Sequence record: OP380604.1
Direction: 5' to 3' (one strand)
DNA: 64,000 nt
The position numbers and the translations under genes are program-made. The notes beneath the pieces are model-generated. The model saw only the letters and a program-made list of their open reading frames with translations. It had not been told where the DNA came from and made no database searches. This document shows, one piece after another, positions 38,547 to 57,278 of this stretch (position 1 is the stretch's first letter; every line of letters begins with the position of its first letter).

Positions 38547-38743
38547 ACACCCTGAAAGTTCGTCTGTTTGACGCACAGGAAGCCCGTACCCAAGAAACTG
38601 AATTCTATCAGGGTTTCTTTGCTCAACTGGCTAAAGAACTGGGCCTGGAAGGCGAAGCTGCTACCCAACCGGAAGCTTATCTGAAAGCAATCGCTGAACT
38701 CAAAGCTCCGAAAGCAGTTGACGGCGAGCTGGTAACCGAGTAA
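38510..38743 (+). CDS. gp57A: tail fibre chaperone
   Basis: LKVRLFDAQE coiled coil; between gp1 and gp57B. Confidence 0.8.
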   Translation: MQEQVQQLQAQLNTLKVRLFDAQEARTQETEFYQGFFAQLAKELGLEGEAATQPEAYLKAIAELKAPKAVDGELVTE

Positions 38744-39237
38744 TGTTAAAGTCGTTTTCTGAATTCACAGAAGCGACTAAGCAAGACACGCGCGGCACTT
38801 ATGTAGCAGTACGTTACAAGCCGCGCACTGCAATGGCAATTGTTAGAAGATGCAGGGAAATGGGGATACCTAATCTTGTCCCCTATGATAAGCTGCACAC
38901 TACATTGATCTACTCAAGAAAATACTTGCCCGAATTTCAAGCAAGTGGTAAGATCGATAAAGTGTTGCAAGGCGTCATGATACCTGATATCTTTGAAACT
39001 CAAAGCGGCAAACGTGCTCTTGTGCTCAAGCTCACCGACCCATGGTTCGGTGCTAGACACAAAGAGATCAGAGAAAAGCATGGGGCGACTCATGATTATC
39101 CTGACTATCATCCACACATTACCGCTAGTTATGATGTTGGTCCTGATTTTGTTTTGCCAAAAAGCTTTACAATAGATTACAAGCTATGTATACTTGAAGA
39201 GTACACAGAAGATTTAGATTTTGACTGGAGTCCCTGA
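38743..39237 (+). CDS. gp57B: 2H phosphoesterase family protein
   Basis: two HxT/S motifs: LHTTLIYSR and YHPHITASYD. Confidence 0.92.
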   Translation: MLKSFSEFTEATKQDTRGTYVAVRYKPRTAMAIVRRCREMGIPNLVPYDKLHTTLIYSRKYLPEFQASGKIDKVLQGVMIPDIFETQSGKRALVLKLTDPWFGARHKEIREKHGATHDYPDYHPHITASYDVGPDFVLPKSFTIDYKLCILEEYTEDLDFDWSP

Positions 39238-39261
39238 TTCCAGTCTTTTAGAACACATTGA

Positions 39262-39363
39262 CGGGGATTAGTTCAGTGGGATAGAACAACTGCCTTCTCC
39301 TGTGCTTTCCAACGAGAGTACAGAAGAAGCAGTGGGTCACTGGTTCGAATCCAGTATCCTCGG
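39262..39363 (+). tRNA. tRNA-Arg-like gene with 28-nt hairpin insert in the anticodon loop
   Basis: CGGGGAT/ATCCTCG acceptor, D arm with A20, ACTGC/GCAGT stem, T arm; loop CTTCT[28 nt]AA. Confidence 0.8.
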
Positions 39364-39454
39364 CAATGTGTTTTACACAAAAGAAAAAGTCGCGTCGGAA
39401 CTGACACTCATAAAGTCCAATGTACACAAGAGAGTTCCGGGCGCGCATTATTTT

Positions 39455-39539
39455 GGGAGATTGGTGTAATTGGTAGCCGCAGGACACTCAAAATGTCCCG
39501 TCTTCTGACGTACCGGTTCGAGTCCGGTATCTCCCACCA
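39455..39539 (+). tRNA. tRNA-Leu(CAA)
   Basis: cloverleaf, GGACA-CTCAAAA-TGTCC, long variable arm, CCA. Confidence 0.93.
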
Positions 39540-39544
39540 AATTC

Positions 39545-39629
39545 GGGGATATGGCGTAATCGGTAGCCGCGGGGGATTTAAAATCCCAAGTCTTCGGACG
39601 TGTGGGTTCGAGTCCCACTATCCCCACCA
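39545..39629 (+). tRNA. tRNA-Leu(TAA)
   Basis: cloverleaf, loop TTTAAAA, long variable arm, CCA. Confidence 0.93.
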
Positions 39630-39649
39630 AACGAAAAGAGGTTGACACG

Positions 39650-39886
39650 TTGAAACTTGTCTGTATACTGGACCAAGATGAAGACGGAAGCTTTAGTGGA
39701 CGTGTTTATGGTCTAAACGGCATCTGTATTTTCGCTGGAAATCGTTCGGAATACCCGAGTGTAGTGGCATTAGAAGCTGCGAAAGCTCACATCGAAGCGT
39801 CAAAGGAAATGAATTTTGAAATTTTCGTTGACAACAACGCTGGAATCATTGAGAATGACCAGCATGTATTTTCTATCACTGTTTAA
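39650..39886 (+). CDS. hypothetical protein
   Basis: TTG start after GAGGT SD. Confidence 0.6.
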   Translation: MKLVCILDQDEDGSFSGRVYGLNGICIFAGNRSEYPSVVALEAAKAHIEASKEMNFEIFVDNNAGIIENDQHVFSITV

Positions 39887-39895
39887 GGAACTAAA

Positions 39896-40285
39896 ATGTC
39901 CCGTTTTGTTGTATCCCCTGTAGCTGGTAAAATCACCCGTTTCGTAGTCAACTCCGAGAAAGTTGTTGGTCTGGTAAAGCTGCATTCTGGTAAGACTCTG
40001 CTGACTGTAAAAGTTGACGGTCAACTGCCGACTGTGTATACTGTTGCCGAGCGTTTCGAAGATCTGGCGCTGAAACTGAAAGATTGCTACATCAAACGCG
40101 CTGTTGTTACTCCGGTTGAACATCGTGGCATTGCGAAGTTCGTAGTTGGTGCCGACAAGATCGTTGGTCTGCATGAGAACATTCACGGTGAAGTTCTTCT
40201 GAGTTTCCGCACTTCCGAGTATGACGTACCGAATCGCGTCATGATCGAAGAATCTCTGGAAGCTGTTCTGGAAGCTATCGCTTAA
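39896..40285 (+). CDS. hypothetical protein with internal tandem duplication
   Basis: AAGGA SD, terminator after; two similar ~64-aa halves. Confidence 0.8.
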   Translation: MSRFVVSPVAGKITRFVVNSEKVVGLVKLHSGKTLLTVKVDGQLPTVYTVAERFEDLALKLKDCYIKRAVVTPVEHRGIAKFVVGADKIVGLHENIHGEVLLSFRTSEYDVPNRVMIEESLEAVLEAIA

Positions 40286-40292
40286 TTATCAT

Positions 40293-40316
40293 AAGCCCCT
40301 TAACTGGGGCTTTTTT
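40293..40316 (+). terminator. intrinsic terminator
   Basis: AAGCCCC-TTAACT-GGGGCTT plus T-run. Confidence 0.8.
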
Positions 40317-40340
40317 GTAACCTAATCAAGGGAAAATTAC

Positions 40341-41447
40341 GTGGGTTCTTTCAATACTATTTGTGGCGTTAGTCGTCATATCGTTACATGTGGCGAACCG
40401 GTTGTTCTGCTGGCACTCGTTTGTAACGGAGAAACTATTCCAGCCGCACCTGGTTGCTATAACTGGGATCGATACCAGCTCGCTATGCATCTTCCGATGT
40501 ATGCGACATATGATGACTATGGTAACTTCGAGATCGAAGATAACGACGCATACCAAGCGTTCCAAGACATGGTAAAGACTTATATCGTTTGTGACGAAGA
40601 ACGTAATGTTAACATTGATGATCTATTCGATCCGAAAAAGCTGTCATATCAGGACTTGATGCGCGAAGAAGCTTTGTATATTCAGCCAGCTTTCTCATTC
40701 AGCGGTGCAAAGAAATCTCCCGTTATGTTCATGGTAATCAAGCGGAAAGTCTATGATCTGATGGTAGCAGAATATGACCGCACATTGGAACAATCATGGA
40801 ACAAAGACTACGCTATCAAGTCGCATAAAGAGATCCGCGGTACTTTCGCCAGGCTTGAAATTCGCGATCCAGATAAAAAACGCTTGACTAAAGAAGAACT
40901 AGCTTTTAGACTGGAAGAAATAGAGAAGGAGCCAGAGATCATTCGTGATGAACTGAGAAAGGATCTGTTCAATGAATATCTCAGTATGGGTTTCTCCTGG
41001 GAATATGATAGCGTTGTCAATGTAGGAATGGGTCCTTACTCTAAAAACAACTTGACAAACCGTGTTATTAAACTCACTGCTGCTAATGCAGATCTGCATA
41101 TCGGACTCCGTAAGTTTGTTAGCATGTTGTGTGAACTCAACATCGAGTTTAACCCACAACAATACGGCAGTCAGGACAACGATCATCTGTATCATGCCGA
41201 TCTGATGACTCGAATTGTGGTAGCTGGTGCTGAGAATGATCAGACTCGCGAATATCCACTGAAAATTAGTCCAAAATTAGTTGTTAACTTGAATTCGGAT
41301 GCTGTGTCAGAATACATGTATCCAGTCGGTAGCTGGAAAGAAAATCCGGATCTGATTCATGACAAGAACGGCAACATTGTTCCGTCAATGCAGAAGTACG
41401 GTGAGTTCAACGAGATTTCAAACATCGTGGAGTTCAAGGAGGTCTAA
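40341..41447 (+). CDS. hypothetical protein (368 aa)
   Basis: long ORF with GTG start and AGGG SD. Confidence 0.8.
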   Translation: MGSFNTICGVSRHIVTCGEPVVLLALVCNGETIPAAPGCYNWDRYQLAMHLPMYATYDDYGNFEIEDNDAYQAFQDMVKTYIVCDEERNVNIDDLFDPKKLSYQDLMREEALYIQPAFSFSGAKKSPVMFMVIKRKVYDLMVAEYDRTLEQSWNKDYAIKSHKEIRGTFARLEIRDPDKKRLTKEELAFRLEEIEKEPEIIRDELRKDLFNEYLSMGFSWEYDSVVNVGMGPYSKNNLTNRVIKLTAANADLHIGLRKFVSMLCELNIEFNPQQYGSQDNDHLYHADLMTRIVVAGAENDQTREYPLKISPKLVVNLNSDAVSEYMYPVGSWKENPDLIHDKNGNIVPSMQKYGEFNEISNIVEFKEV

Positions 41448-41522
41448 TCGTGAAAGACGAATGGCCTGATTTCTAAAAGGTGGCTCGAAAGAGCCGCCAT
41501 ATTAATGCGATAACGTATTACT

Positions 41523-41855
41523 ATGGCTAATGAGGAAATGAAGATGGAAATTGATAATCTGTTTGACTTTATGGACGCTTTGCGTAAACAAGACGCACCG
41601 GAAGAGTTCATTGACTCTGATGGACTTGGGGACGCGCTGGAAGAGATCATTAATGATATTAAAGGTCCGATGAAGCGTGGCTCACGCGATTTCTACAATC
41701 ACGGATATAAGCTTTCTATGGACGATATCGAAGTCTATTTTGAGGAAAGCCACTGTTCTTGCTGTCGTGCGGAACAAGAATCTTGGACTGTTAGCTATCA
41801 GCGTGTGTGGGATCATCTTGTAAAAACAAATCGAGTTGCGGAGATCGAAGAATGA
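41523..41855 (+). CDS. hypothetical acidic protein
   Basis: ORF in co-oriented string. Confidence 0.7.
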   Translation: MANEEMKMEIDNLFDFMDALRKQDAPEEFIDSDGLGDALEEIINDIKGPMKRGSRDFYNHGYKLSMDDIEVYFEESHCSCCRAEQESWTVSYQRVWDHLVKTNRVAEIEE

Positions 41856-42139
41856 AAGCTGCTGTGATTCTGCTTGCGCTGTTGAGCTTTGGTGCTCAGT
41901 CCGAAGAAATGTGCAAGGTAAAAGTCTGTAACAAGATCGAACGTTTCTCACTGTCTATCTGGTCACATATGAAAGATAAGATGGGTCAAACTTGCTTTGA
42001 GGCTATTCTGCCTAAGTCCGAGGCAGTTGTTGACAAAGTGTTGGACTCTGAGTCTCGCTGGTATCAGGGTAGCTCCATCAACGTTACCAAGCGTTCTGTG
42101 ACTCGCGTGAAAGAAGTGTATTCCTGCGATACTAAATAA
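41852..42139 (+). CDS. hypothetical exported protein
   Basis: MKAAVILLALLSFGAQS signal peptide; ATGA overlap with the upstream stop. Confidence 0.75.
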   Translation: MKAAVILLALLSFGAQSEEMCKVKVCNKIERFSLSIWSHMKDKMGQTCFEAILPKSEAVVDKVLDSESRWYQGSSINVTKRSVTRVKEVYSCDTK

Positions 42140-42164
42140 GTTTACTATACCAATAGGTGATGTT

Positions 42165-42389
42165 ATGATTAAGTTCTTGTTGATTACGTCTCTGATGGTT
42201 AACTTCGGTACAAACTTTGGCTCAAATAGCCATGCAATTCAGAAGTTTGACACCGAATCGGAATGCAGAGCCGCGCTGAAAGTCGCAGAAGAAGAAATGA
42301 AACTGCGATATGGCGAAAACAGAATGCAGATCATTGGTGGTAAAACCGAATTCAATGGTCAATGTAAGCCGTATTATTACGACAAGTAA
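42165..42389 (+). CDS. hypothetical exported protein
   Basis: hydrophobic N-terminus, AGGTG SD. Confidence 0.7.
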   Translation: MIKFLLITSLMVNFGTNFGSNSHAIQKFDTESECRAALKVAEEEMKLRYGENRMQIIGGKTEFNGQCKPYYYDK

Positions 42390-42432
42390 AGAATTTGATA
42401 AACCGTAAGATCTTTCCGAGCATGTATTGGTG

Positions 42433-42651
42433 GCAATATGCTCGTATGGACGGGACCAGCGCCCACCTAGCTGGTTGACAGTAGACACTAAATATGTTTA
42501 GTGGCAGTGGAACCCCATATTGTGCTAACACTGCGATGCGGACTGTCTTTATCACGGTATGCCGTAAATCTAAAGTGGAAGTGAACCCTTAGTCAGTCTT
42601 CGGACCAAACCGGCAGTAGCATGAAGCAATGTTGGGATACCGTGATAAAGA
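42433..42651 (+). ncRNA. two adjacent structured RNA candidates
   Basis: multibranch fold 42433-42523; 15-bp perfect helix 42546-42560/42637-42651 enclosing a GTC-TTCG-GAC hairpin. Confidence 0.45.
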
Positions 42652-42654
42652 TTG

Positions 42655-42863
42655 TTTACACTCTATAAACCGTATGCTATCATTATCACATGCTCTTAAA
42701 GTAGAGCATAAATAAAAGATAGTTTACAGCGTTGATAAAACGTGATACAATCTTTATAAGGCTCCGTTCAGCAATCAAAACTTTTCTGCGGATGAAAACA
42801 AAAAGTGAGCCTGTCAAAAATTTAAGAAGCTTTGTTTACAGTCACTAAATAGTAGTGTATAGT
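42655..42863 (+). promoter_or_regulatory. three tandem early/sigma70-type promoters driving the tRNA array
   Basis: TTTACA-17-TATCAT (42655), TTTACA-17-TACAAT (42723), TTTACA-17-TATAGT (42835); each has TG just upstream of the -10. Confidence 0.85.
42759..42813 (+). ncRNA. helix-CAGCAA RNA 1
   Basis: AGGCTC/GAGCCT helix with TTCAGCAA on the 5' side; starts at the predicted TSS. Confidence 0.55.
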
Positions 42864-42874
42864 AAACAAAGATA

Positions 42875-42938
42875 GGAATGAGTTCAGCAACACTTAAAAA
42901 AGCAAATTATTGGAAATATGCCTTAAAAGTTCATTCCG
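42875..42938 (+). ncRNA. helix-CAGCAA RNA 2
   Basis: GGAATGAGTT/AGTTCATTCC helix then CAGCAA; follows the third promoter. Confidence 0.55.
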
Positions 42939-42963
42939 TTTCTTATTTGAAAGTCGTTATTGC

Positions 42964-43045
42964 GGAGGTGTGGCTCAAAGGTTGAGCGGCAGACTGTTAA
43001 TCTGCGGGTAATAACCCTATGTTGGTTCGAGTCCAACCTCCTCCG
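42964..43045 (+). tRNA. tRNA-Asn(GTT) with long variable arm
   Basis: GCAGA-CTGTTAA-TCTGC, G73, GGGT-AATA-ACCC extra arm. Confidence 0.88.
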
Positions 43046-43070
43046 CAATGATGATTTAAAGATTTGTCAA

Positions 43071-43180
43071 TTGGAACATTGCAGCAAACAACACTTATTT
43101 TTCCTTTCACGAAAAACGATGAGGTTCGATTCCTCAGCTCGCGACAAACGAGTCCTCGGACGGTAGAAACAGTGTTCCAG
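43071..43180 (+). ncRNA. circularly permuted tRNA-like RNA (YrlA/Y-RNA architecture)
   Basis: 11-bp closing helix, CAGCAA, anticodon-like arm (TTC), T arm, capped acceptor, D arm, in that order. Confidence 0.7.
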
Positions 43181-43184
43181 ATAT

Positions 43185-43259
43185 AGCCGTGTAGCTCATT
43201 GGTAGAGCACTCCCCTGATAAGGGAGGGGTAGACAGTTCAACTCTGTCCACGGCTACCA
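43185..43259 (+). tRNA. tRNA-Ile(GAT)
   Basis: CTCCC-CTGATAA-GGGAG, CCA. Confidence 0.94.
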
Positions 43260-43387
43260 AATTCAACAACAATGAGAGAATAAAATGAATCTAATAATCC
43301 CGGTATTGTTCTTGTGTGATAACGATCATCAAGACTGTCACCCAGATGGATGTTTTTATTGTTCGCATTATTATTTGTAGTTTAAAC

Positions 43388-43462
43388 GGTGTATTAGTAT
43401 AATGGCTATTATTCGTGACTGTCTATCACAAGATACGGGTTCGATTCCCGTATACACCGCCA
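43388..43462 (+). tRNA. tRNA-Asp(GTC)
   Basis: loop CTGTCTA, G73, CCA. Confidence 0.92.
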
Positions 43463-43536
43463 GATTTTCTGCCTAGCAGGAAAGAAAGAACTTACCCGAC
43501 AAAAGTTTAGTTCTTAGTTCTTTGAATAGTTTGACT

Positions 43537-43680
43537 GGATTCACTTCTGCAAACACATACAAACTCGAAATCTACTATTAATGGATAGCACTCCTTTACT
43601 TCGGTACTTGGATGTGCGGCTGAGAGGGAACAGCATATAAAAGTAACGCGGGTTAGTCACCGCTCCCGTATGTGAATCCG
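43537..43680 (+). ncRNA. helix-CTGCAA RNA 4
   Basis: GGATTCAC/GTGAATCC helix followed by TTCTGCAA. Confidence 0.5.
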
Positions 43681-43748
43681 AAGACTTGCGATAATCACTT
43701 GCAAATAGTGATTATTCTAATGTATACTTTCGAGTATCTATTAGAATC

Positions 43749-43824
43749 GGGGGTTTAGCTCAGTTGGGAGAGCAACTGGTTTGCAACCAGTAGGTCAAGG
43801 GTTCGAATCCCTTAACTTCCACCA
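43749..43824 (+). tRNA. tRNA-Ala(TGC)
   Basis: ACTGG-TTTGCAA-CCAGT, G3:U70, CCA. Confidence 0.95.
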
Positions 43825-43831
43825 AATTTAA

Positions 43832-43906
43832 GCGGGATTAGCTCAGAGGTAGAGCGTCAGCCTTCCAAGCTGTTCGTCGCCGATTCGAATTCGGTATCCC
43901 GCTCCA
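43832..43906 (+). tRNA. tRNA-Gly(TCC)
   Basis: loop CTTCCAA, U73, CCA. Confidence 0.93.
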
Positions 43907-43912
43907 GACATT

Positions 43913-43987
43913 GTGCCGGTAGCCAAGTGGTAAGGCAAGTGATTGCAAATCACTTTATCGTCTGTTCAAATCAGATCCGGTACTCCA
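43913..43987 (+). tRNA. tRNA-Cys(GCA)
   Basis: AGTGA-TTGCAAA-TCACT, U73, CCA. Confidence 0.93.
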
Positions 43988-44123
43988 TAATTGAGGGTCA
44001 ACGATGTTGATTAAATCGATTTTAAAGATGTATACTGATAACTGTTGGCGTTGTGGTTATTACGGCAGTAAATGCATTTGTGATAGTCCATACGCTTGAT
44101 CAAACAACATTGAGAAATAAGTT

Positions 44124-44549
44124 ATGAGCTTACCTAGTTATGCGCTGTTCATGAAGAACGGCGATTGTGTTGGGTCATGCTTTATCAACTGCGGTTGGTG
44201 GCATGATGAACCTCGCACACTGAAACAAATAATTCGTTATACCGAAACCGATGAATGTCCTATTGACTATGATAGCGTAATCGCGTATGGTGTTACGTAT
44301 AGCAATGACTTAGAATTCGAGCTTCTGAAAGCAGAAGAAACGGAAGCTAAGTTAAAAGAGATCGCTGAAAATAAGCGTAAGCAAAGTTGGGAAGATTTAC
44401 ATCAGAAGATGATCGAACGGATGAAACCGATTGATCGAATGCTTCCTGAATTGATTGCTGCTGAAATATACGGAGTTCAGCCAATGAATGAACATGTTCC
44501 TAACGTTTTTTCGTTGAAGGTAGTTTACGGCGATGATATTTCTTGCTAA
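44124..44549 (+). CDS. hypothetical protein
   Basis: ORF within the tRNA array; C-terminal EIYGVQPM segment resembles major-capsid-derived peptides seen in small T4-like ORFs. Confidence 0.7.
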   Translation: MSLPSYALFMKNGDCVGSCFINCGWWHDEPRTLKQIIRYTETDECPIDYDSVIAYGVTYSNDLEFELLKAEETEAKLKEIAENKRKQSWEDLHQKMIERMKPIDRMLPELIAAEIYGVQPMNEHVPNVFSLKVVYGDDISC

Positions 44550-44733
44550 GATACGTTATATGAAAAGCGAATACATGGGTTCATCTAAATCATTCGATAC
44601 CATTAAACTGGTAGAAGCAGAAGATGCAGACGAGGCCGATAGCAAAGTTCGCGAATATTACAACGACAAAAGTTCAGATTATGGCACATATTATTCTGTG
44701 CTGGATGTTTCGATTGAAGAACCGATTAGGTGA
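44533..44733 (+). CDS. hypothetical protein
   Basis: overlapping co-oriented ORF. Confidence 0.65.
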   Translation: MIFLAKIRYMKSEYMGSSKSFDTIKLVEAEDADEADSKVREYYNDKSSDYGTYYSVLDVSIEEPIR

Positions 44734-44736
44734 ATT

Positions 44737-44925
44737 ATGAGTAAAGAAATTCGAATGAGGTTTACATTAAAAGAACTGAAACAAATGATTGAACTTGCGG
44801 AAACCAATAACACAACTCTCGTTGATGTTGGTTATACCCCGGGTAGTATCAGTTCTATGGTTAGAGCTAAACCTGTTGTTAAAGATGCCGAATTCGTAGA
44901 CATTACCGATTACGATAGTTGGTAA
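44737..44925 (+). CDS. hypothetical protein
   Basis: AGGTG SD, co-oriented. Confidence 0.65.
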   Translation: MSKEIRMRFTLKELKQMIELAETNNTTLVDVGYTPGSISSMVRAKPVVKDAEFVDITDYDSW

Positions 44926-44935
44926 AAATAATTAT

Positions 44936-45006
44936 AGGGGCGTAGCAAATCGGTTATGCGGCGGATTCCAAATCCGTTGAGGTGGGTTCGACTCCTACCG
45001 CCCCTG
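44936..45006 (+). tRNA. tRNA-Trp(CCA)
   Basis: GCGGA-TTCCAAA-TCCGT, G73; 3' CCA not encoded. Confidence 0.9.
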
Positions 45007-45015
45007 CAAAATAAC

Positions 45016-45091
45016 GCGCCGTTAGCTTAGTCGGTAGAGCATCGGACTTTTAATCCGAGGGTCGGTGATTCGAGTTCACCACGGCGCACCA
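45016..45091 (+). tRNA. tRNA-Lys(TTT)
   Basis: TCGGA-CTTTTAA-TCCGA, CCA. Confidence 0.94.
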
Positions 45092-45303
45092 AATAGTCGA
45101 GTCATGTTGTTAGTCATGACTAACAATGTGGCGACAGGCTATAAAAAAGCGATAGATTGAAGAAGGGGCGAATAACTTAAACGTTACTATTGACTTCCTC
45201 GCGCTTCTGTTACTGCGGCTTATGAGCGGTGGTAATAGTTAAATCTCTTTACAACACCAAGTGTTGATTATTGCCTCGGTATCTGATACTCTGGATACCG
45301 TCT

Positions 45304-45378
45304 AGTGAATTAGCTCAGAGGTAGAGCAAGTGCTTCATACGCACTGGGTCACTGGTTCGAATCCAGTATTCACTACCA
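45304..45378 (+). tRNA. tRNA-Met(CAT), elongator (or Ile2)
   Basis: AGTGC-TTCATAC-GCACT, CCA. Confidence 0.9.
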
Positions 45379-45420
45379 AATAATCGCGCTTAAACCGCTG
45401 ATTCACGTTTAAGCCTTCTC

Positions 45421-45494
45421 GGGGACGTAGATAACTACACAATCGCAGGTCACTGGGATCTGAGATACGGGTGGAAATCCCGTCGTCTCCACCA
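45421..45494 (+). ncRNA. atypical tRNA-like RNA with Ala acceptor identity
   Basis: GGGGACG/CGTCTCC-ACCA (G3:U70, A73), T loop TGGAAAT, D loop without GG, loop CACTGGG. Confidence 0.65.
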
Positions 45495-45502
45495 AATATA
45501 AG

Positions 45503-45621
45503 TGCATTGCCCTAAACATCATTGGACGAGATAAGCCCTCGTATGGAGCCAACGAGCCGCAAGCTTGTAGCAATCAAAGGCTAGTCAGTGGGTACTACCT
45601 GACGGGGATCGCGACAGTGCA
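45503..45621 (+). ncRNA. structured RNA candidate
   Basis: TGCATTG/CAGTGCA closing helix with ACGAG/CTCGT and GTCAG/CTGAC hairpins. Confidence 0.4.
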
Positions 45622-45665
45622 TTTAAATTTGGTACTAAATAGACTTGCTATTAAAGGAGTTTATA

Positions 45666-45905
45666 ATGAGTAATGATTTAGACGCTCGCGCCAATCGTGG
45701 CTCGGGTAATCAATGCAGCAAAGCATGGTACGACGCTCCATTGTGGAAAAACGTTGGTCCACTTGCTAGAAAGAAAGCAGCGGAAGCCGCTGAAAAAGAA
45801 AAACAAAAAGATGTTTACTCTACTGCGGAAACATGCGATAATGTTCCTGTTGTTGAAGAAGACTTAAAAGCAAAACAAAGACGATTGTTTAGTTTCGCTT
45901 ACTGA
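45666..45905 (+). CDS. hypothetical protein (late promoter ACTAAATA at 45634)
   Basis: AAGGAG SD. Confidence 0.75.
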   Translation: MSNDLDARANRGSGNQCSKAWYDAPLWKNVGPLARKKAAEAAEKEKQKDVYSTAETCDNVPVVEEDLKAKQRRLFSFAY

Positions 45906-45909
45906 CAGA

Positions 45910-45985
45910 TCTCCGTTCGTCTAGTGGACTAGGACACTGCCCTTTCACGGCGGTAACATGGATTCGAATTCCATACGGAGAACCA
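45910..45985 (+). tRNA. tRNA-Glu(TTC)
   Basis: CTGCC-CTTTCAC-GGCGG, CCA. Confidence 0.93.
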
Positions 45986-46005
45986 AATTGATTAGTGCGC
46001 TAAGA

Positions 46006-46079
46006 TGCGAGTTGGAGGAGAGGCCGTCCTCGCTGGGCTCATATCCCAGAGATCACCTGTTCGAATCAGGTACTCGCTT
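46006..46079 (+). tRNA. initiator-type tRNA-fMet(CAT)
   Basis: CTGGG-CTCATAT-CCCAG (three G-C pairs), 1:72 mismatch; U73 and no CCA, possibly degenerate. Confidence 0.8.
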
Positions 46080-46104
46080 CTTAGCGTACTAAATAAAGAA
46101 TAAT

Positions 46105-46196
46105 GGATGTGCTGCAATGACGGTGGTATTGCACCAGACTGTAAATCTGGCCCCACAGGGTAAACATTGTAGGTTCGACTCCTACCGCATCCACCA
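46105..46196 (+). tRNA. tRNA-Tyr(GTA)
   Basis: CCAGA-CTGTAAA-TCTGG, long variable arm, CCA; late promoter ACTAAATA at 46088. Confidence 0.92.
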
Positions 46197-46202
46197 AATT
46201 TC

Positions 46203-46274
46203 GCCTCTATAGCTCAGTGGTAGAGCAACTGCCTTGTAAGCAGTAGGTCCTCGGTTCGAGTCCGAGTGGGGGCT
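46203..46274 (+). tRNA. tRNA-Thr(TGT)
   Basis: ACTGC-CTTGTAA-GCAGT. Confidence 0.92.
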
Positions 46275-46358
46275 CAGTAAGAGGGATCCAGATGCCCCGT
46301 TTGCAGCATCTGGTATGTAACTCGTTACATAAATGCTTTCTTTCGAGTGATCATTTAT

Positions 46359-46434
46359 GTGACGGTAGTTCAGTTGGTAGAACTCCAGGTTGTGATCCTG
46401 GTAGTCACGGGTTCGAAGCCCGTCCGTCACCCCA
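46359..46434 (+). tRNA. tRNA-His(GTG)
   Basis: CCAGG-TTGTGAT-CCTGG, C73, CCA. Confidence 0.93.
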
Positions 46435-46439
46435 ATCAC

Positions 46440-46515
46440 GGGTCCTTAGCTCAGTTAGTAGAGCATATGCCTGAAGAGCATAGTGTCCTCGGTGCGATTC
46501 CGAGAGGGCCCACCA
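46440..46515 (+). tRNA. tRNA-Phe(GAA)
   Basis: TATGC-CTGAAGA-GCATA, CCA. Confidence 0.93.
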
Positions 46516-46540
46516 GTTTAATCGCTTTGAAAGGTGAAAT

Positions 46541-46646
46541 CGCTAATGCTTTTAAGTGCAATGAGATAACTTCTCGAAAGTCGGGATATAGATTGCCCCG
46601 TCGGTATTGATTTCATGTAGAGTTCGATTCTCTACCTTAGCGTCCT
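46541..46646 (+). ncRNA. tRNA-like RNA (acceptor and T arm, non-tRNA core)
   Basis: CGCTAA/TTAGCG helix plus GTAGAG-TTCGATT-CTCTAC T arm. Confidence 0.5.
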
Positions 46647-46662
46647 ATTATAAAAGAATATT

Positions 46663-46739
<77 letters not shown>

Positions 46740-47025
46740 GAGTTGCCTGTAAAGGCCCGTTAAAGAGAATGCTAACAATGTCCTAGGAAACTTTGTTAGA
46801 AGTCCAGCTGAAAATTCCCTCTCCCGTTTTGAACGGTGATGCGATTTAAGGGGCGAGTGATTCACTTGTGGATCATTTCAAAGTATTCTAATATAGAGTT
46901 CTTTGAATTGATTCAAGCGTTGCATCGTTTGAATATGTGGAGTTACCTTAGTAGGCCGTAGAGATACGTTGTCCGAAAGATAAGACGATGATCCACGTTA
47001 AACGTTCATATTCGTCCCAGTTTAT

Positions 47026-47101
47026 AGGGGATTCGCCTAGTTGGCCCAAGGCACCGGGTTTGATCCCGGTATCACAAGTTCGAATCTTGTATCCCCCGCC
47101 A
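47026..47101 (+). tRNA. tRNA-Gln(TTG)-like with a 6-nt anticodon loop
   Basis: CCGGG-TTTGAT-CCCGG; G73, CCA. Confidence 0.75.
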
Positions 47102-47240
47102 AATTTAGCTTGCAAAGGCTAAAATGAGCTGCTATGATTCCCGTAGCTCGTTAAATTATCAAACGGGAAGGTGATGCGCGTATGTAGCCAGAACGTAATG
47201 TTCAAGAGTCATGACGACATAGAGCCGTGTCGAAGAATTT

Positions 47241-47332
47241 GGAAGCGTGGCAGAGTATGGCTTATTGCAACTGACTTGAAATCAGTCAGTCGAGAAATCG
47301 GCCCGTGGGTTCAAATCCTACCGCTTCCGCCA
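47241..47332 (+). tRNA. tRNA-Ser(TGA)
   Basis: ACTGA-CTTGAAA-TCAGT, long variable arm, G73, CCA. Confidence 0.94.
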
Positions 47333-47356
47333 AATCAAACAATAGAGAGTTATATT

Positions 47357-47578
47357 ATGAAAGCGACAAAACAAGATCTTGAACTAGCATCCCGTTTCGC
47401 TGATAAAGCTGATTCATACGGTTTCGCTACTACTCAAGGTGATGCCAAATGTACCAATCAACAAATCGAAAAGCTGCTAAAGCTTGGACTGATTAAAGTT
47501 ACTCGCGGTGTTCACTGCATTGGTCAGAAAGATTTTGGTGGTTTTGTTCGAAGAGGCACTCACTATTGCAAAGCTTAA
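47357..47578 (+). CDS. hypothetical protein
   Basis: MKATKQDLE start after GAGAG SD (the longer track ORF overlaps tRNA-Ser). Confidence 0.7.
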   Translation: MKATKQDLELASRFADKADSYGFATTQGDAKCTNQQIEKLLKLGLIKVTRGVHCIGQKDFGGFVRRGTHYCKA

Positions 47579-47688
47579 AACGAGAGATCGAGGAAAATGT
47601 AAGAGCCTCGTTCGAGTTATCCGGCAAGCGTGTTACTGATTCTCAATGGGAACAGATTAAACGAGTTGCTGAATACATCAAAGAACAT

Positions 47689-47776
47689 GGAGAAATGACA
47701 GAGAGGCCGAACGTAGCGGATTGCTAATTCGTAGGCCCGCAAGGGTCCGTGGGTTCGAATCCCACTTTCTCCTCCA
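47689..47776 (+). tRNA. tRNA-Ser(GCT)
   Basis: loop TTGCTAA, long variable arm, CCA. Confidence 0.9.
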
Positions 47777-47778
47777 AT

Positions 47779-47856
47779 GCACCAATGATGGGAATTGGTC
47801 TACCTGGCTGATTTAGATTCAGTCGCTTCTCGGTTCGAATCCGAGTTGGTGCACCA
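47779..47856 (+). tRNA. tRNA-Leu(TAG) with short variable loop
   Basis: GCTGA-TTTAGAT-TCAGT, A73, CCA. Confidence 0.88.
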
Positions 47857-47902
47857 AATAAATTGGTAGCCGCATACGTCTAAATAATACAAATAAAGTA
47901 TT

Positions 47903-48631
47903 ATGGAGAACGTTATGGCTACTCATAGAAAACCGGAACAAATAGAAACTACCGATCTTTGTAAATATGGATGCGGAAATATCGCAAAATATAAAAGTGT
48001 TGGTGGGAATCTGATGTGTGAATGTTCGTCAAATAAATGTCCGGTTAATATAAAAAAGAATTCAGAAAAACTAAAAGCACTATATGATTCTGGTATGAGA
48101 AAATCCGGAGCGGAGCTGTATAAATCTCTTAGCCACGACATCAAAACTAGAATGTCGTGGAGTAAAGGATTAACAAAAGAAACCAATTCCGAACTGGAGA
48201 GACCAACTTTGGTTGGTAAACGGTTTGGTGCATCATTGTACGGCCACACAGAAGAATCAAAGCGCAAGATTTCCATAGCCAGAACGGAGTGGCTAAAGAA
48301 GACTGAAAACCGAACGAATCTTGGAAGATTCAAAAAGTCTTGGATGGAAGAAACATTTGAATCGTATCTAAATGAAAATAAAATTACGGGTTGGATAGCA
48401 GAGAAACACTTCTACTCTCCTGTTACAAAGAAAAATTATTATGTTGACTTTCTCTTTCAAGAAAAGATGCTTATATTAGAATTGGATGGAACCCAACATA
48501 GAAAGTCTATAGAACATGATAAACAAAGAGACTTGTGGTTCAATAGTATTGGATACAAAGTTATAAGAGTTCCGGTTGACGAATTCAAACGGAGATTTTT
48601 CTCCGGGGTTGGGTTTATCGATCTACTGTAA
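47903..48631 (+). mobile_element. free-standing homing endonuclease (NUMOD3-like plus DUF559/Vsr-like nuclease)
   Basis: GHTEESKRKISIAR, YYVDF..ILELDGTQH..HDKQRDLWFNSIGYKVIRV; late promoter TCTAAATA at 47879. Confidence 0.8.
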
Positions 48632-48640
48632 TAAATAAAA

Positions 48641-48662
48641 GGGAGCTTCGGCTCCCTTTTTC
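48641..48662 (+). terminator. intrinsic terminator
   Basis: GGGAGC-TTCG-GCTCCC plus T-run. Confidence 0.88.
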
Positions 48663-48676
48663 ATTAGGAGTATAAT

Positions 48677-49063
48677 ATGAGTTTCAAAGAGTTTAAAGGC
48701 GATACAAACTCAAGTGTTGGCGAACTAATTTCCAAGCTTCTGAAAAGCGTGGCATACGTTCATCACCAACACCTGACTACTACTATCTATAGCCGTCACA
48801 AAGCGCTCCAAGCGTATTACGAAGAACTTCCAGAGCTGATTGATAGCTTTGCAGAATGCGCTATCGCTCGTGGATATGCTCAGAGTTTTACAGCTACTCA
48901 TGCGGAAGTTGAAGTTGAAATGATGATTGACAATTTCCTGCAAGAGTGTACTATGGTGCATGAGTATTTGGAGACTAAACGCCATTTCGATCTGGTGAAT
49001 ACACTGGAAGATATCATGACGTTTTTGACTTCGATTAGATACAAATTGAATCTTAAAGGTTGA
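48677..49063 (+). CDS. ferritin-like four-helix protein (DUF5856-like)
   Basis: VHHQHLTT..YSRHKALQAYYEELPELIDSFAE..NTLEDIM..YKL. Confidence 0.7.
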   Translation: MSFKEFKGDTNSSVGELISKLLKSVAYVHHQHLTTTIYSRHKALQAYYEELPELIDSFAECAIARGYAQSFTATHAEVEVEMMIDNFLQECTMVHEYLETKRHFDLVNTLEDIMTFLTSIRYKLNLKG

Positions 49064-49103
49064 CTATCATTAGGAACTGTGTAATAATGGTTCCTATAAA
49101 CAT

Positions 49104-49178
49104 GGCCCCGTAGCTGGAGGGTTCAAGCTGGCAGCTCATAACTGCTTGATGTGGGTTCGATTCCCACCGGGGCCACCA
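49104..49178 (+). tRNA. tRNA(CAT), Ile2 or Met
   Basis: GGCAG-CTCATAA-CTGCT, CCA; own TTGACT..TAATAAT promoter at 49060-49088. Confidence 0.9.
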
Positions 49179-49199
49179 AATTCATCTGAGGAAATAATC

Positions 49200-49406
49200 A
49201 TGTTTTATGTTGTAATTCGTTCATTCTTTGATATAGAATACGGTGGAGAATACAAAGAGTTCTATGCCGTTCGTACCGACAAAAAGGTTGCTGAATCCGT
49301 TGTTGCTCGCGCTAGTGCTGAGTATGCCGAGAAGGGATATAGTGAAAGCTACCGATTCTCGATAGAAGAACATACCGAAGAAAGTTTTGTGGATTTGGAC
49401 ATATAA
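49200..49406 (+). CDS. hypothetical protein
   Basis: GAGG SD; MFYVVIRS start. Confidence 0.7.
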   Translation: MFYVVIRSFFDIEYGGEYKEFYAVRTDKKVAESVVARASAEYAEKGYSESYRFSIEEHTEESFVDLDI

Positions 49407-49717
49407 TGCATTATTACGACTTTGACAAACAGAAAAACATCCGGGTGTCTCAGTTTCAACGTCTTTATCTCGCACGTAAGTTCCATAACGGAGCTCGCGT
49501 TTGTCGTTACATCAACGAAATGCACCAACAAAACAGACTTGTTTATGTTGCGGAGTCGCCGTTTAACGCCGTAGAAGATAAAAAGATGTTGATTGCTTCT
49601 GTTAGTGAGTTCGCATTCAGGAGAGAACTAGCTAGACAGAAAGACGATTTCAACTTTAAAATGCACCAAGCTTTACATCAAGCTAACTGGGAATACGAAC
49701 ATGATTCTGATGATTGA
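49406..49717 (+). CDS. hypothetical protein
   Basis: coupled ORF. Confidence 0.7.
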   Translation: MHYYDFDKQKNIRVSQFQRLYLARKFHNGARVCRYINEMHQQNRLVYVAESPFNAVEDKKMLIASVSEFAFRRELARQKDDFNFKMHQALHQANWEYEHDSDD

Positions 49718-49970
49718 AGGCTATAAAAAGAAAGTTGTTCATCACCGTTGGGAAATCATTGCATTTCTGAATCAAAAAGATATTGTGGATGAGGATTACA
49801 TCGAAGATTGTGCCGATGAAATTCGAGATATCATGAAAAGTGGTGCCGAATACTGTTATGGTGATTTTTGTCCGTATCACAGTGAAATCGGCGAGTCTCG
49901 TTATCTGATCGTTAGTGACGATCAAGACAAATTGGCAGAAATGATTGCTGATGCCAGAGAAGAGATCTAA
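49701..49970 (+). CDS. hypothetical protein
   Basis: coupled ORF. Confidence 0.7.
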   Translation: MILMIEGYKKKVVHHRWEIIAFLNQKDIVDEDYIEDCADEIRDIMKSGAEYCYGDFCPYHSEIGESRYLIVSDDQDKLAEMIADAREEI

Positions 49971-49975
49971 ATAAT

Positions 49976-50060
49976 AGGTGTCAGTTGTAAGTCTCAATTG
50001 GAAGAGCTACTGGGCAGAAACCCAGTGGGGTGCGGGTTCGAGTCCTGCCTTCTGACGCCT
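49976..50060 (+). ncRNA. tRNA-like RNA with extended acceptor and non-anticodon loop
   Basis: AGGTGTCAG/CTGACGCCT, D-like arm, ACTGGG-CAGAAA-CCCAGT, T arm; late promoter TCTAAATA at 49966. Confidence 0.6.
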
Positions 50061-52745: not shown

Positions 52746-53345
52746 ATGGCGAAACTTTTTTTCACGCATAGTGCGATGAACGTGGGCAAGAGCACTCAAT
52801 TACTGCAAGTGGCTTTCAACTACAACGAGAGAAATCAAAACGTTCTGCTGTACAAACCTGCGTTTGACACTAGAACAGAAGGTACGATTGGATCACGTAT
52901 CGGTATCCAGCGTGAGTGTCGCTGTGTGCATGTTGACGAAAACATGTTTACAATGATCGAAAAAGAGAGTAAACTGTCCGATATCGCCTGTGTTCTTGTT
53001 GATGAAGCACAGTTCCTGACTGAAAAACAAGTGTGGGAACTGTCCGACGTTGTTGACAAGCTGGATATCCCTGTTATGTGCTACGGACTGCGTACCGATT
53101 TTCTCGGTAACTTGTTCCCTGGCTCTAGGGCATTACTTTCGATTTCAGATGAAATTAGACAACTGTCTGGTATCTGTGATTGTGGTAGAAAATCCTGTAT
53201 GGTAGCTCGCGTTGATGATAACGGCAATGTTATCCGTCGAGGTGAACAAATTTGCATTGGGGCTGAACAACGTTACATTTCGTTCTGCCGCAAGTGCTGG
53301 AAAAACAAACTGTCCTATGATTGGGACAAATTCAAACAAACCTGA
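52746..53345 (+). CDS. tk: thymidine kinase
   Basis: HSAMNVGKST, VLVDEAQF, CYGLRTDF, CDCG, YISFCRKC. Confidence 0.97.
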   Translation: MAKLFFTHSAMNVGKSTQLLQVAFNYNERNQNVLLYKPAFDTRTEGTIGSRIGIQRECRCVHVDENMFTMIEKESKLSDIACVLVDEAQFLTEKQVWELSDVVDKLDIPVMCYGLRTDFLGNLFPGSRALLSISDEIRQLSGICDCGRKSCMVARVDDNGNVIRRGEQICIGAEQRYISFCRKCWKNKLSYDWDKFKQT

Positions 53346-53358
53346 AAGAGGTAATTCT

Positions 53359-54795
53359 GTGTCTAATTTTATGAATGCAATGGTACAAGCTCAAGCCCGC
53401 ACTGCTAACGGTGCTGTCACTAACTACACCACTGGCGACAAGTGTCTGAATCTGTTTTCTCAGATTGGTTCCTCTCGCGGGAAAGATCTGACCCAGATGT
53501 TTGTTGATGCTTATACCGAGTCTCCTGACTGGGCTGTTCGCATTCTGCAATGGGCTCGCGATATTCGCGGTGGTGCCGGTGAACGTGAACAATTCATCCG
53601 CCTGCTGAAAGTCCTTGCGCATCGTCACCCTGTTGACGCCACCGTAGTTCTGATGAACACTCCTGAAATCGGTCGCTTCAAAGACGTGGTAGCAATGTTC
53701 AATTCTCCGATTCAGGACGCTGCTGTGGCTATCATGGTTGATGCAATCATGACCAAGCAAAACGGTCTTGCTGCAAAGTGGGCACCTCGGAAGGGCAAAG
53801 AAGCCGGTATTCTGGCCAAAGCTATGCGAATGACTGCTAAAGAATATCGTCACACTATCGTCCGTATGTCGAACACCGTTGAACAAAAGATGTGTGCTCG
53901 TCAGTGGGACGGTATTGAGTTCGGTAAACTGCCGTCTGTTGCATCTGCTCGATATCAGAAAGCATTCCTGAAAAACGCGAACGAGCGTTATGTTGCTTAT
54001 CTTGAGTCTCTGAAAAAGGGTGAGGCTAAGATCAACGCTGCTGCGGTTTATCCGTATGACATGATCAAATCCCTGCGTACCGGTTCTTCTGTTGCTGCTG
54101 ATGCACAATGGAAAGCACAACGCGACTGGATGGCTGGCTCCACTGAAAACGTAATCGCGATGGTTGACGTTTCTGGCTCTATGGGCACTCCGACCGCTGT
54201 TGCTGGCTTGTCTGCTATGGACATCGCGATTTCTCTGGGTCTGTACATCGGCGAACGCTCGCGCGGTGTGTTCAAGAACGAAGTGATTACCTTCGATGAT
54301 AATCCTGAGTTCTACAACATCAAAGCGAAAGGCGACGATCTGCAAAGCATGGTGAATCATCTGGGACGCGCTCCGTGGGGTGGCTCTACCAACTTTGCTG
54401 GTGCATTCAAGATCATTCTTGATCGCGCTGTACGCAATCGAGTTCCGCAAGAAGATATGCCGACTATGATGGTTGTCTTGTCTGACATGGAATTCAACGT
54501 TGCTGATGGTGGCTATAGTGGTTACTATCGTATGCGTGACCGTGAGCCTACCAACTTTGAGGTGATTCGTCAGACTTACCGCGACGCTGGTTACGAAATG
54601 CCGAAACTGGTGTTCTGGAATCTTTGCCCGCGTCCGACTAACAATCCGGTGACCAAAGATGATCAAGGCACTGCTCTTGTTTCTGGTTTTAGTCCCGCAA
54701 TCATGGAGACAATCCTGAGTGCGAAAGAGTTTAACCCGATGCAAATCATGCTCGACAAGATCATGAGCGACCGTTACGTCGGTATCGACTTCTAA
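53359..54795 (+). CDS. DUF2828-type helical plus vWA protein (Ro60/TROVE-like architecture)
   Basis: GTG start after GAGGT; RDIRGGAGERE, AAKWAPR, EQKMCARQW, VDVSGSM MIDAS, TFDDNP, WGGSTNF, SDMEF, LVFWNL. Confidence 0.85.
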   Translation: MSNFMNAMVQAQARTANGAVTNYTTGDKCLNLFSQIGSSRGKDLTQMFVDAYTESPDWAVRILQWARDIRGGAGEREQFIRLLKVLAHRHPVDATVVLMNTPEIGRFKDVVAMFNSPIQDAAVAIMVDAIMTKQNGLAAKWAPRKGKEAGILAKAMRMTAKEYRHTIVRMSNTVEQKMCARQWDGIEFGKLPSVASARYQKAFLKNANERYVAYLESLKKGEAKINAAAVYPYDMIKSLRTGSSVAADAQWKAQRDWMAGSTENVIAMVDVSGSMGTPTAVAGLSAMDIAISLGLYIGERSRGVFKNEVITFDDNPEFYNIKAKGDDLQSMVNHLGRAPWGGSTNFAGAFKIILDRAVRNRVPQEDMPTMMVVLSDMEFNVADGGYSGYYRMRDREPTNFEVIRQTYRDAGYEMPKLVFWNLCPRPTNNPVTKDDQGTALVSGFSPAIMETILSAKEFNPMQIMLDKIMSDRYVGIDF

Positions 54796-57156: not shown

Positions 57157-57278
57157 GGGGAAGTAGCTCAGTGGTAGAGCAGTAGTCGCAAAAAGCGGAA
57201 TCTGATTAAGATTCTTTACCGCAAACCCTTGCAAAATCAAACTGTTGGTCGTGGGTTCGAATCCCACCTTCTCCGCCA
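57157..57278 (+). ncRNA. tRNA-like RNA X3 with enlarged anticodon domain
   Basis: GGGGAAG/CTTCTCC-GCCA, canonical D and T arms, 54-nt loop in the GTAGT/ACTGT stem. Confidence 0.82.

Follow-up and report, generated by a model that had tools for sequence, protein, structure and literature searches.

During the analysis of a 64,000-nucleotide stretch of sequence record OP380604.1 (the window, in which each position equals the record position minus 124000), derived from Aeromonas phage avDM12-TAAL, a T4-related Straboviridae phage of the Aeh1 group, we observed four RNAs that share a terminal structure, here called the handle, and carry different cargo on it. We estimate at roughly 80% the probability that they are phage Y-like RNAs of a divergent Ro60 clade, whose handle docks on the phage DUF2828 protein. 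The initial annotation of the stretch had already proposed a shared protein-binding handle on different cargo RNAs with DUF2828 as the partner, and this proposal is supported by the fold of the protein, by a two-way genomic linkage and by the modular nature of the cargo. Direct binding of the handle to DUF2828 is what we infer from these comparisons.

Structure of the four RNAs

The four RNAs are all encoded on the plus strand, and their coordinates, terminal helices, motif and 3' G were located exactly as the initial annotation had claimed. In each of them the terminal helix is accompanied by the sequence U(U/G)C(A/U)GCAA, just 3' of its 5' strand, and by a G after its 3' strand; folding predictions leave the motif unpaired in all copies.

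RNA1, a short Y-like RNA (42758-42813), has its outer helix at 42759-42764/42807-42812, the 3' G at 42813 and the motif TTCAGCAA at 42767-42774, where the 5' bulge holds UUCAGCAA; it also contains the inner helix ACUUUU/AAAAGU (42780-42785/42801-42806) and the apical loop CUGCGGAUGAAAAC. RNA2, of the same short type (42873-42939), has its outer helix at 42875-42881/42931-42937, the 3' G at 42938, the motif TTCAGCAA (UUCAGCAA) at 42883-42890, the inner helix ACUU/AAGU and the hairpin GCAAAUUAUUGGAAAUAUGC. Both are organized as stem-bulge-stem, with an unpaired 5'-side stretch of 10-16 nt after the outer helix that carries UUCAGCAA, and with the inner helix stacking almost directly on the outer one on the 3' side. 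The claim that RNA1 and RNA2 begin at or just after the predicted start sites of their own promoters was borne out. The predicted start of promoter P2 (42723-42751, plus strand, TTTACA-17-TACAAT), at about 42757-42759, coincides with the 5' end of RNA1, and that of promoter P3 (42835-42863, plus strand, TTTACA-17-TATAGT), at about 42870, lies 4-5 nt 5' of the RNA2 helix. P2 is kept in all 7 related phages and P3 is invariant across them.

RNA3 is a long Y-like RNA (43071-43181) that sits between tRNA-Asn and tRNA-Ile. Its helix is at 43072-43079/43172-43179, the 3' G at 43180 and the motif TGCAGCAA (UGCAGCAA) at 43080-43087. From 5' to 3', the cargo consists of a hairpin (43098-43116), the T-arm-like GAGGUUCGAUUCCUC (43121-43135), followed by another hairpin (43137-43153), and a GG-rich D-like stretch, which is unpaired. 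RNA4, also long (43536-43681), lies between tRNA-Asp and tRNA-Ala; its helix at 43537-43544/43672-43679 is closed by U43536-G43680, which provides the 3' G, and its motif is the variant TTCTGCAA (UUCUGCAA) at 43545-43552. The interior of RNA4 is conserved, distinct and devoid of tRNA features; in RNA1, RNA2 and RNA4 no element of a permuted tRNA mimic was found.

Conservation and covariation

The 8-nt motif combined with any 6-bp helix is not significant alone, since a helix can be drawn for about 15 of the 24 copies that the window contains, and the single-sequence fold energies of the RNAs are unremarkable (z from -1.0 to -1.8). With such a high background of the simple descriptor and such plain fold energies, the case rests on comparison. 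The orthologous alignments with six relatives (Aeh1, PX29, Ah1, phiWae14, phiAS5 and AsFcp_2) showed that the motif is unchanged and that the helices change in a compensatory fashion. In RNA1, pair 42764/42807 changes from CG to GC. Two pairs of RNA2 are replaced in PX29 and AsFcp_2, 42875/42937 from GC to AU and 42878/42934 from AU to GC. Three pairs are replaced in RNA3, namely 43074/43177 (GC to AU), 43076/43175 (AU to UA) and 43077/43174 (CG to GC), and its T-arm GAGGUUCGAUUCCUC covaries as well. For RNA4, the identity among 13 records of Aeh1-like phages is 90-95%, and its helix is invariant across the relatives. A reading of TTGCTGAA on the minus strand as a MotA box, the mark of a T4-type middle promoter, was rejected by eye because the -10 element lies too close to it and the covariation of the helices is at the level of RNA.

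A covariance model, R1, was built from 37 environmental short RNAs adjacent to DUF2828 genes, with no Aeh1-like sequence included, and was searched without filters against both strands of positions 39000-50000. RNA2 was matched with 35.5 bits (E-value 4e-7), the top match among all the sources searched, RNA1 with 29.9 bits (1e-5) and RNA3 with 24.7 bits (2e-4), the latter with a 56-nt insert. Any other element in the searched interval remained at or below 8.9 bits (E-value of at least 1.6), which is not significant.

The consensus of the family, counted upstream from the C of CAGCAA, has A at -10 (76%), G at -9 (96%), G or A at -8, A or U at -7 and U at -6 (87%), followed by 2-3 variable paired positions, U at -2 (90%) and A or U at -1. 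The family motif is therefore UW-CAGCAA; it is followed by an A/C-rich tail, an A-run precedes the 3' strand and a conserved G comes after it. The four helices had been described initially as different in sequence. This is correct for the inner pairs, which vary, and not for the outer ones, which are semi-conserved (AGGAU.../...AUCCU-G); the Ro60 site of Y RNAs follows the same pattern. Similarly, the description of the interiors as unrelated holds among the four RNAs and fails across the family, where those of RNA1 and RNA2 reappear in phages that are very distant. In fact, the interior AAAACU...UGCGGAU...AAA of RNA1 (CAGCAAUCAAAACU...UGCGGAU...AAA, within 42758-42813) is nearly identical to that of the first RNA of Mycobacterium phage Tourach (locus L012, 5481-5535), and the hairpin AAAAGCAA(A)UUAUUGGAAAUA(U)GC of RNA2 (within 42873-42939) is found almost unchanged in an environmental locus (L075, 5839-5895). 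AACUUUU, AAAAGC and UUGGA are over-represented inside the short forms. This sharing among distant phages suggests that the short forms carry defined subclasses of cargo.

The handle RNAs in other phages

The same handle, with the AGGAU-type stem, the 5' UW-CAGCAA and the 3' G, was found in five unrelated cultured lineages, each of which has a DUF2828 homolog: the Aeh1-like Aeromonas phages of the window; Eneladusvirus, represented by Yersinia phage fHe-Yen9-04, with at least 9 copies within 4 kb; Felixounavirus wV8, with 4 copies (locus L011, 26159-26933) just downstream of a DUF2828 gene that lies directly upstream of the tRNA array; Mycobacterium phage Tourach, with 3 tandem copies (short, tRNA-like, short) placed directly after a gene annotated as 'Ro-like RNA binding protein' and before a terminator; and the KVP40-like Vibrio phage V09. 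All four RNAs of the window belong to a real and widespread family of phage RNAs, previously undescribed. In the literature searched we found no paper describing a CAGCAA handle or DUF2828-linked RNAs, and a search for 'DUF2828' gave nothing relevant.

The Eneladusvirus copies were met in a blastn search with RNA3, which gave matches in the tRNA cluster of these jumbo phages of Yersinia, Serratia and Erwinia. In fHe-Yen9-04 all the copies have (U)UA-CAGCAA, a 3' (A)G and a GGAAU/AUUCC-type terminal helix of 8-10 bp. The 528-aa protein g441, encoded beside these RNAs, was considered as a DUF2828 candidate and rejected, as it is no relative; the homolog proper is g176, which is encoded some 200 kb from the RNAs.

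The cargo is demonstrably modular, being a tRNA mimic, a small hairpin or another fold. Some copies contain a complete permuted tRNA mimic, made of a T-arm, a closed acceptor-like hairpin and a perfect D-arm (for instance in locus L009, 9001-9122), which is how YrlA is built, and all three elements are present in the relatives Y9_g and wV8_d.

Long forms whose cargo lacks tRNA features fall into at least two further classes. One ends in CCUUUCUGGAGGGGAAAGCAAAAACUCGCC (L017, 5255-5349; L029, 5713-5807; L037, 3133-3232), and the second, of 165-197 nt, contains CACUAUGGUAG...CUGGAG...GUGAUGG (L083, 3392-3587; L088, 716-879; L096, 631-795).

Genomic linkage of the handle and DUF2828

A tight, strand-specific and reciprocal genomic linkage connects the RNA family and DUF2828. 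The forward analysis was carried out on 80 environmental viral loci with DUF2828 homologs (40-47% identity) and 6-kb flanks, 896 kb in total, which were retrieved with an alignment as the query, a single-protein query having returned only four close relatives. With a descriptor consisting of a helix of at least 7 bp and the exact CAGCAA, 134 matches were obtained on the gene strand and 37 on the other one. Within 700 nt of the DUF2828 gene, 73 matches were on the same strand (0.67 per kb) as compared to 6 on the opposite strand. Shuffled loci gave about 20 matches over the full 896 kb, and the handle is therefore about 30-fold enriched near the DUF2828 genes, and in a strand-specific manner. 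Overall, 51 of the 80 loci carry a handle on the same strand within 700 nt of DUF2828.

In the reverse direction, the viral collection was scanned with the short-form pattern TAGGAT, 5 nt, CAGCAA, 25-55 nt, ATCCTG. At least 120 stretches were found, with a chance estimate of a few tens at most. A DUF2828 homolog is present within about 9 kb in 35 of 119 stretches (among the matches listed), a strong enrichment, and all 35 are on the strand of the RNA. The predicted association with DUF2828 was thus observed from both sides, with counts that cover contig stretches.

Other structured RNAs were also noticed near DUF2828 genes, namely a permuted transfer-messenger RNA (71.7 bits; L028, 1353-1676) and a group I intron (59 bits; L060, 8800-9042).

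The DUF2828 protein

The proposed partner is encoded on the same strand as the RNAs, about 10 kb downstream of them and directly after the thymidine kinase gene (tk), by a DUF2828 + DUF7788 (vWA) gene at 53359-54795, the start of which is uncertain within 53353-53371. The mechanical open reading frame (ORF) begins at a TTG at 53212, inside tk; since the homologs are 460-480 aa long and begin about 48 residues after this start, that frame is too long, and the true start is near 53359 (V) or 53371 (M). The protein matches Pfam PF11443, PF25043 and PF13519 (DUF2828, DUF7788 and VWA_2), the TROVE domain not being among its Pfam matches, and PHROG 850 annotates it as 'RNA-binding protein'.

An AlphaFold2 model computed from a 32-sequence alignment has a predicted local distance difference test score (pLDDT) of 84.7 and a predicted template modelling (TM) score of 0.85. 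When this model was compared to the PDB with Foldseek, the top nine matches were all Ro60/TROVE structures (including 2i91, 1yvr, 9kop, 9nf8, 1yvp, 9nep and 9nen), with E-values from 3e-9 to 1e-6, TM-scores up to 0.61 and about 570 aligned columns, corresponding to the full length; isolated vWA domains ranked only after these nine. The D-x-S-x-S of the MIDAS type (metal ion-dependent adhesion site) is invariant among the homologs (D272, S274 and S276). The predicted structure matches a Ro60-like fold, with a ring of helical repeats and a vWA domain bearing a MIDAS. Among 50,697 sequenced phage genomes, at least 710 encode a DUF2828 protein, including those of Felixounavirus, KVP40-like, Listeria, Staphylococcus, Campylobacter and mycobacterial phages.

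Comparison with known Y RNAs

In 254 bacteria and in 22 phages, such as mycobacteriophage ET08, RNAs of the YrlA type have been reported no more than 4 kb from a TROVE gene; their 5' motif, GNCGAAN0-1G, is believed to be in contact with Ro60 (Chen et al., 2014; PMC4201824). In Thermus phage phiLo, the phage Ro60 binds Yrl1 and Yrl2 through a CGAA motif in a stem-bulge-stem (PMC12135203). The RNAs described here share several features with these bacterial and phage Y RNAs (Salmonella YrlA/YrlB, YrlA-like RNAs, phiLo Yrl1/Yrl2): a length of 50-150 nt with paired 5' and 3' ends, a conserved 5'-strand motif in a stem-bulge-stem, several paralogs per genome, one class with a permuted tRNA mimic (T-arm, closed acceptor-like hairpin, D-arm), and a location on the same strand as, and usually near, the gene of a Ro60-fold protein. 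They differ in the handle, which has UW-CAGCAA instead of GNCGAAN0-1G or CGAA and the stem base AGGAU/AUCCU-G, in the proposed partner, which belongs to Pfam DUF2828 + DUF7788 and not to TROVE, and in being embedded in phage tRNA arrays. The handle thus follows the Y-RNA architecture of stem, bulge with a 5'-strand motif, and stem, with CAGCAA in place of CGAA.

Rfam scans of the window at gathering and permissive thresholds gave only tRNAs, except for one 22-bit YrlA match that spans the tRNA-Ala/tRNA-Gly junction and is none of the four RNAs. Related long forms in other phages score 23-40 bits with Rfam YrlA (RF02553), mostly on the tRNA-like core, as compared to a threshold of 69 bits; in the long forms of Eneladusvirus only the core of the tRNA mimic is matched (36-40 bits).

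Metazoan Y RNAs, as seen with Ro60 (structures 1yvp and 2i91), also have a terminal stem, a 5'-strand sequence that contacts the protein and a second module that varies among paralogs, and metazoan Ro60 shares with DUF2828 the HEAT-repeat ring and the vWA domain. However, their motif is GGUCCGA with a bulged C, they are RNA polymerase III transcripts with a 3' U tail and they lack a tRNA-like module. Within the Straboviridae, the species 1 and 2 RNAs of the related phage T4 (rnaC and rnaD) are stable small RNAs inside a tRNA cluster, and rnaC contains a T-arm-like hairpin. They were rejected as homologs, since CWGCAA does not occur on the gene strand of the T4 tRNA cluster and R1 gave no match there. 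To our knowledge, T4 has no DUF2828 gene.

The closest precedent on the protein side is gp130 of the Felixounavirus Bas63, described as a structurally Ro60-like protein that is encoded directly upstream of tRNA genes and counters the Ppl defence; the authors suspected that some of the 'tRNA genes' are Y RNAs, and no RNA or motif was identified (PhageMaP preprint, PMC11482910). By its description, this gene has the same arrangement as the DUF2828 gene of wV8, upstream of the tRNA array, and the wV8 protein is 40% identical to that of the window. In contrast to the Bas63 work, the present analysis places and defines the RNAs, with four in wV8 and as many in the window.

Alternative explanations

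Several observations weigh against the reading of the four RNAs as Y-like partners of DUF2828. The evidence for the handle is all comparative. None of the four handles contains GNCGAA or GGUCCGA, the canonical motif for contact with Ro60, and Rfam YrlA (RF02553) does not match RNA1-4 even at E-values up to 10. R1 misses RNA4, which departs from the otherwise invariant CAGCAA; this is due to its CUGCAA motif and, since its ortholog in phiWae14 reads UACAGCAA (CUACAGCAA), the canonical form, at this position, RNA4 was kept as a member with a derived motif. No handle was found within 700 nt of the gene in 29 of the 80 DUF2828 loci, a negative that is soft since the descriptor requires the exact CAGCAA, and 84 of the 119 stretches of the reverse scan (among the matches listed) have no DUF2828 in the approximately 9 kb examined. 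The distance between RNAs and gene is about 10 kb in avDM12-TAAL and about 200 kb in Eneladusvirus, and therefore adjacency is not universal. On the protein side, a phmmer search of the PDB sequences with the DUF2828 protein finds no Ro60, and the link to Ro60 rests on a predicted structure with moderate TM-scores (0.4-0.6).

The linkage to tRNA genes leads to the first alternative, namely that the elements punctuate the tRNA operon or mark it for processing by host RNases (RNase E/G, RNase P or RNase III), without a dedicated phage partner. In fact, tRNA genes are present in 113 of the 119 stretches of the reverse scan and 136 of 152 pattern matches are within 1 kb of a same-strand tRNA (both among the matches listed), the 3' end of RNA3 is only 4 nt from tRNA-Ile, and the T-arm and D-arm mimics of the long forms could be recognised by tRNA enzymes. 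However, 26 of the 49 DUF2828 loci that lack tRNAs still have the handle beside the gene, so that the linkage is no by-product of tRNA clusters, and in Tourach the 9.4 kb examined, in which the three copies stand by the Ro-like gene, contain no tRNA. Most randomly chosen phage tRNA clusters, moreover, have no handle. When 116 viral loci were picked only by a common tRNA D-arm sequence (556 tRNAs), the handle was present in 11, at least 2 of which are on DUF2828-bearing contigs; of the 68 loci with 3 or more tRNAs, only 9 have it, and T4 has none. In addition, RNA1 and RNA2 lie ahead of the first tRNA, each behind a promoter of its own, and we know of no role of CAGCAA as an RNase E or RNase P determinant. 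We consider this explanation improbable.

Still less probable is that the four are trans-acting regulatory small RNAs, in which the exposed CAGCAA and the A/C-rich tail would act as a seed for transcripts containing UUGCUG, the stem serving only for stabilisation. The single-stranded state predicted for each copy of the motif, the terminal stems, which look like stabilising structures, and the early promoters of RNA1 and RNA2 would fit such a role. On the other hand, an unchanged seed in 4 to 10 paralogs per genome would be unusual, and the motif is common to phages of Actinobacteria, Vibrio, Aeromonas and Enterobacterales; with hosts so unrelated, a conserved protein contact fits better than shared targets. 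Neither the semi-conserved base of the helix and the 3' G nor the strand-specific linkage to DUF2828 is accounted for by a seed.

We assign an equally low probability to the handle being bound by another protein (host Hfq, ProQ or PNPase, or a phage protein), with DUF2828 merely belonging to the same accessory module. Linkage is no proof of contact, and the distances of 10 kb and 200 kb mentioned above indicate that adjacency is not needed. However, no other protein family was found near DUF2828 in more than 16 of the 80 loci (20%), as compared to 64% for the RNA, and DUF2828 has, according to its model, the fold of a known Y-RNA binder. The hosts span phyla, which also makes it less likely that one host factor would show this sequence preference in all of them. 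Lastly, copies of a small mobile or selfish repeat spread in tRNA clusters would explain the many copies per genome and their similar inverted termini (GGAAU.../...AUUCC), and this is hardly credible in view of orthologs that keep their pairing at fixed positions in 7 phages by compensatory change, which points to selection on RNA structure, of termini that differ between copies yet covary within orthologs, of an orientation that is strictly that of the flanking genes, and of diverse, functional-looking interiors that include tRNA mimics.

Each of these alternatives covers some of the features; none covers the tRNA-independent, strand-specific linkage to DUF2828 together with the conservation of the motif across hosts.

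Genomic context

The four RNAs open a large tRNA array in which ARAGORN identified 23 tRNA genes; upstream of the array lie a run of small unknown ORFs and an Acb1 gene, directed against the cyclic oligonucleotide-based anti-phage signalling system (CBASS). A further promoter, P1 (42655-42683, plus strand, TTTACA-17-TATCAT), precedes P2, and P1-P3 have the common form TTTACA, 17 nt, TAtnaT, of the T4-early type. Exactly at the predicted start of P1 there is a hairpin (42690-42709, plus strand, AUGCUCU uaaag UAGAGCAU) that has no CAGCAA motif and that stays paired in phiWae14 and phiAS5, where 3 pairs show compensatory change. Between P1 and the end of the last small ORF at 42389, we observed a conserved structured RNA of about 240 nt (42410-42645, plus strand) with no Rfam match. 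RNAalifold, run on 6 phages, gave 69 pairs for it, of which 19 show compensatory changes, and the structure includes a long-range stem of 16 bp (42558-42645).

RNA4 is flanked on either side by conserved hairpins (43466-43530 and 43690-43745, plus strand). One of these, UUUCUGCcuaGCAGGAAA, shows a G-C to A-U change in PX29, and in another, AUAAUCACU...AGUGAUUAU is replaced in other phages by UAGGUACU...AGUGCCUA. A promoter-like site lies 5' of tRNA-Ala (43699-43728). Two matches to the Rfam tRNA model that are unusually long, of 102 and 119 nt and 54 bits each (39262-39363 and 57157-57275, plus strand), are absent from the ARAGORN output and may be tRNAs with insertions or introns. Conversely, ARAGORN gave a tRNA of undetermined identity at 47026-47101 (plus strand; Rfam tRNA, 47.6 bits), with a two-base 'anticodon' (tg), that is, an odd anticodon loop.

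Accessory genes around the array are found on the plus strand at 38743-39237, 44124-44549 and 63066-63968. The Acb1 anti-CBASS homolog is directly upstream of the tRNAs, inside the tRNA cluster there is a 141-aa ORF matching a short fragment of gp23, the major capsid protein, and an ADP-ribosylglycohydrolase is encoded farther along. As a whole, the region around the tRNA array looks like an accessory or counter-defence module.

Possible function and implications

In the handle, the paired ends form a stem with an outer part of the AGGAU.../...AUCCU type, and the invariant UW-CAGCAA is presented single-stranded on the 5' strand, within an asymmetric A-rich internal loop, with the G after the 3' strand. 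If the four RNAs are Y-like partners of DUF2828, this handle would dock on the DUF2828 ring as the stems of Y RNAs do on Ro60. The cargo would then decide the action of each particle or the molecule tethered to it: RNA1 and RNA2 would contribute small conserved hairpins, RNA3 a putative permuted tRNA mimic, which may engage tRNA-binding enzymes or nucleases, and RNA4 a distinct fold. The RNAs would be made early, RNA1 and RNA2 from their own T4-early-type promoters, and RNA3 and RNA4 presumably by cutting of the tRNA precursor. By analogy with Ro60, Y RNA and PNPase, and considering the reported counter to Ppl by the Felixounavirus homolog, the particle may act early in infection on RNA turnover or metabolism, on tRNA quality control or in counter-defence.

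A more specific and tentative idea is that DUF2828 and the handle RNAs make up a phage counter-defence particle, with the cargo serving as decoys or tethers. Such a particle might conceivably disarm those host nucleases, Ppl for instance, whose targets are phage tRNAs or nucleic acids, or redirect host exoribonucleases; we regard this as a possibility with the odds against it. It would account for the residence of the RNAs inside phage tRNA arrays.

The defined handle and a searchable model expose what would be the RNA half of the DUF2828 particle, and the unannotated gaps in many phage tRNA clusters are thereby explained. The divergent Ro60 clade appears to read another RNA code, CAGCAA and not CGAA, and the counter to Ppl by a Ro60-like phage protein now becomes approachable at the RNA level. 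The concept of Y RNA, one handle with many cargos, would in this way be widened to a large group of viruses.

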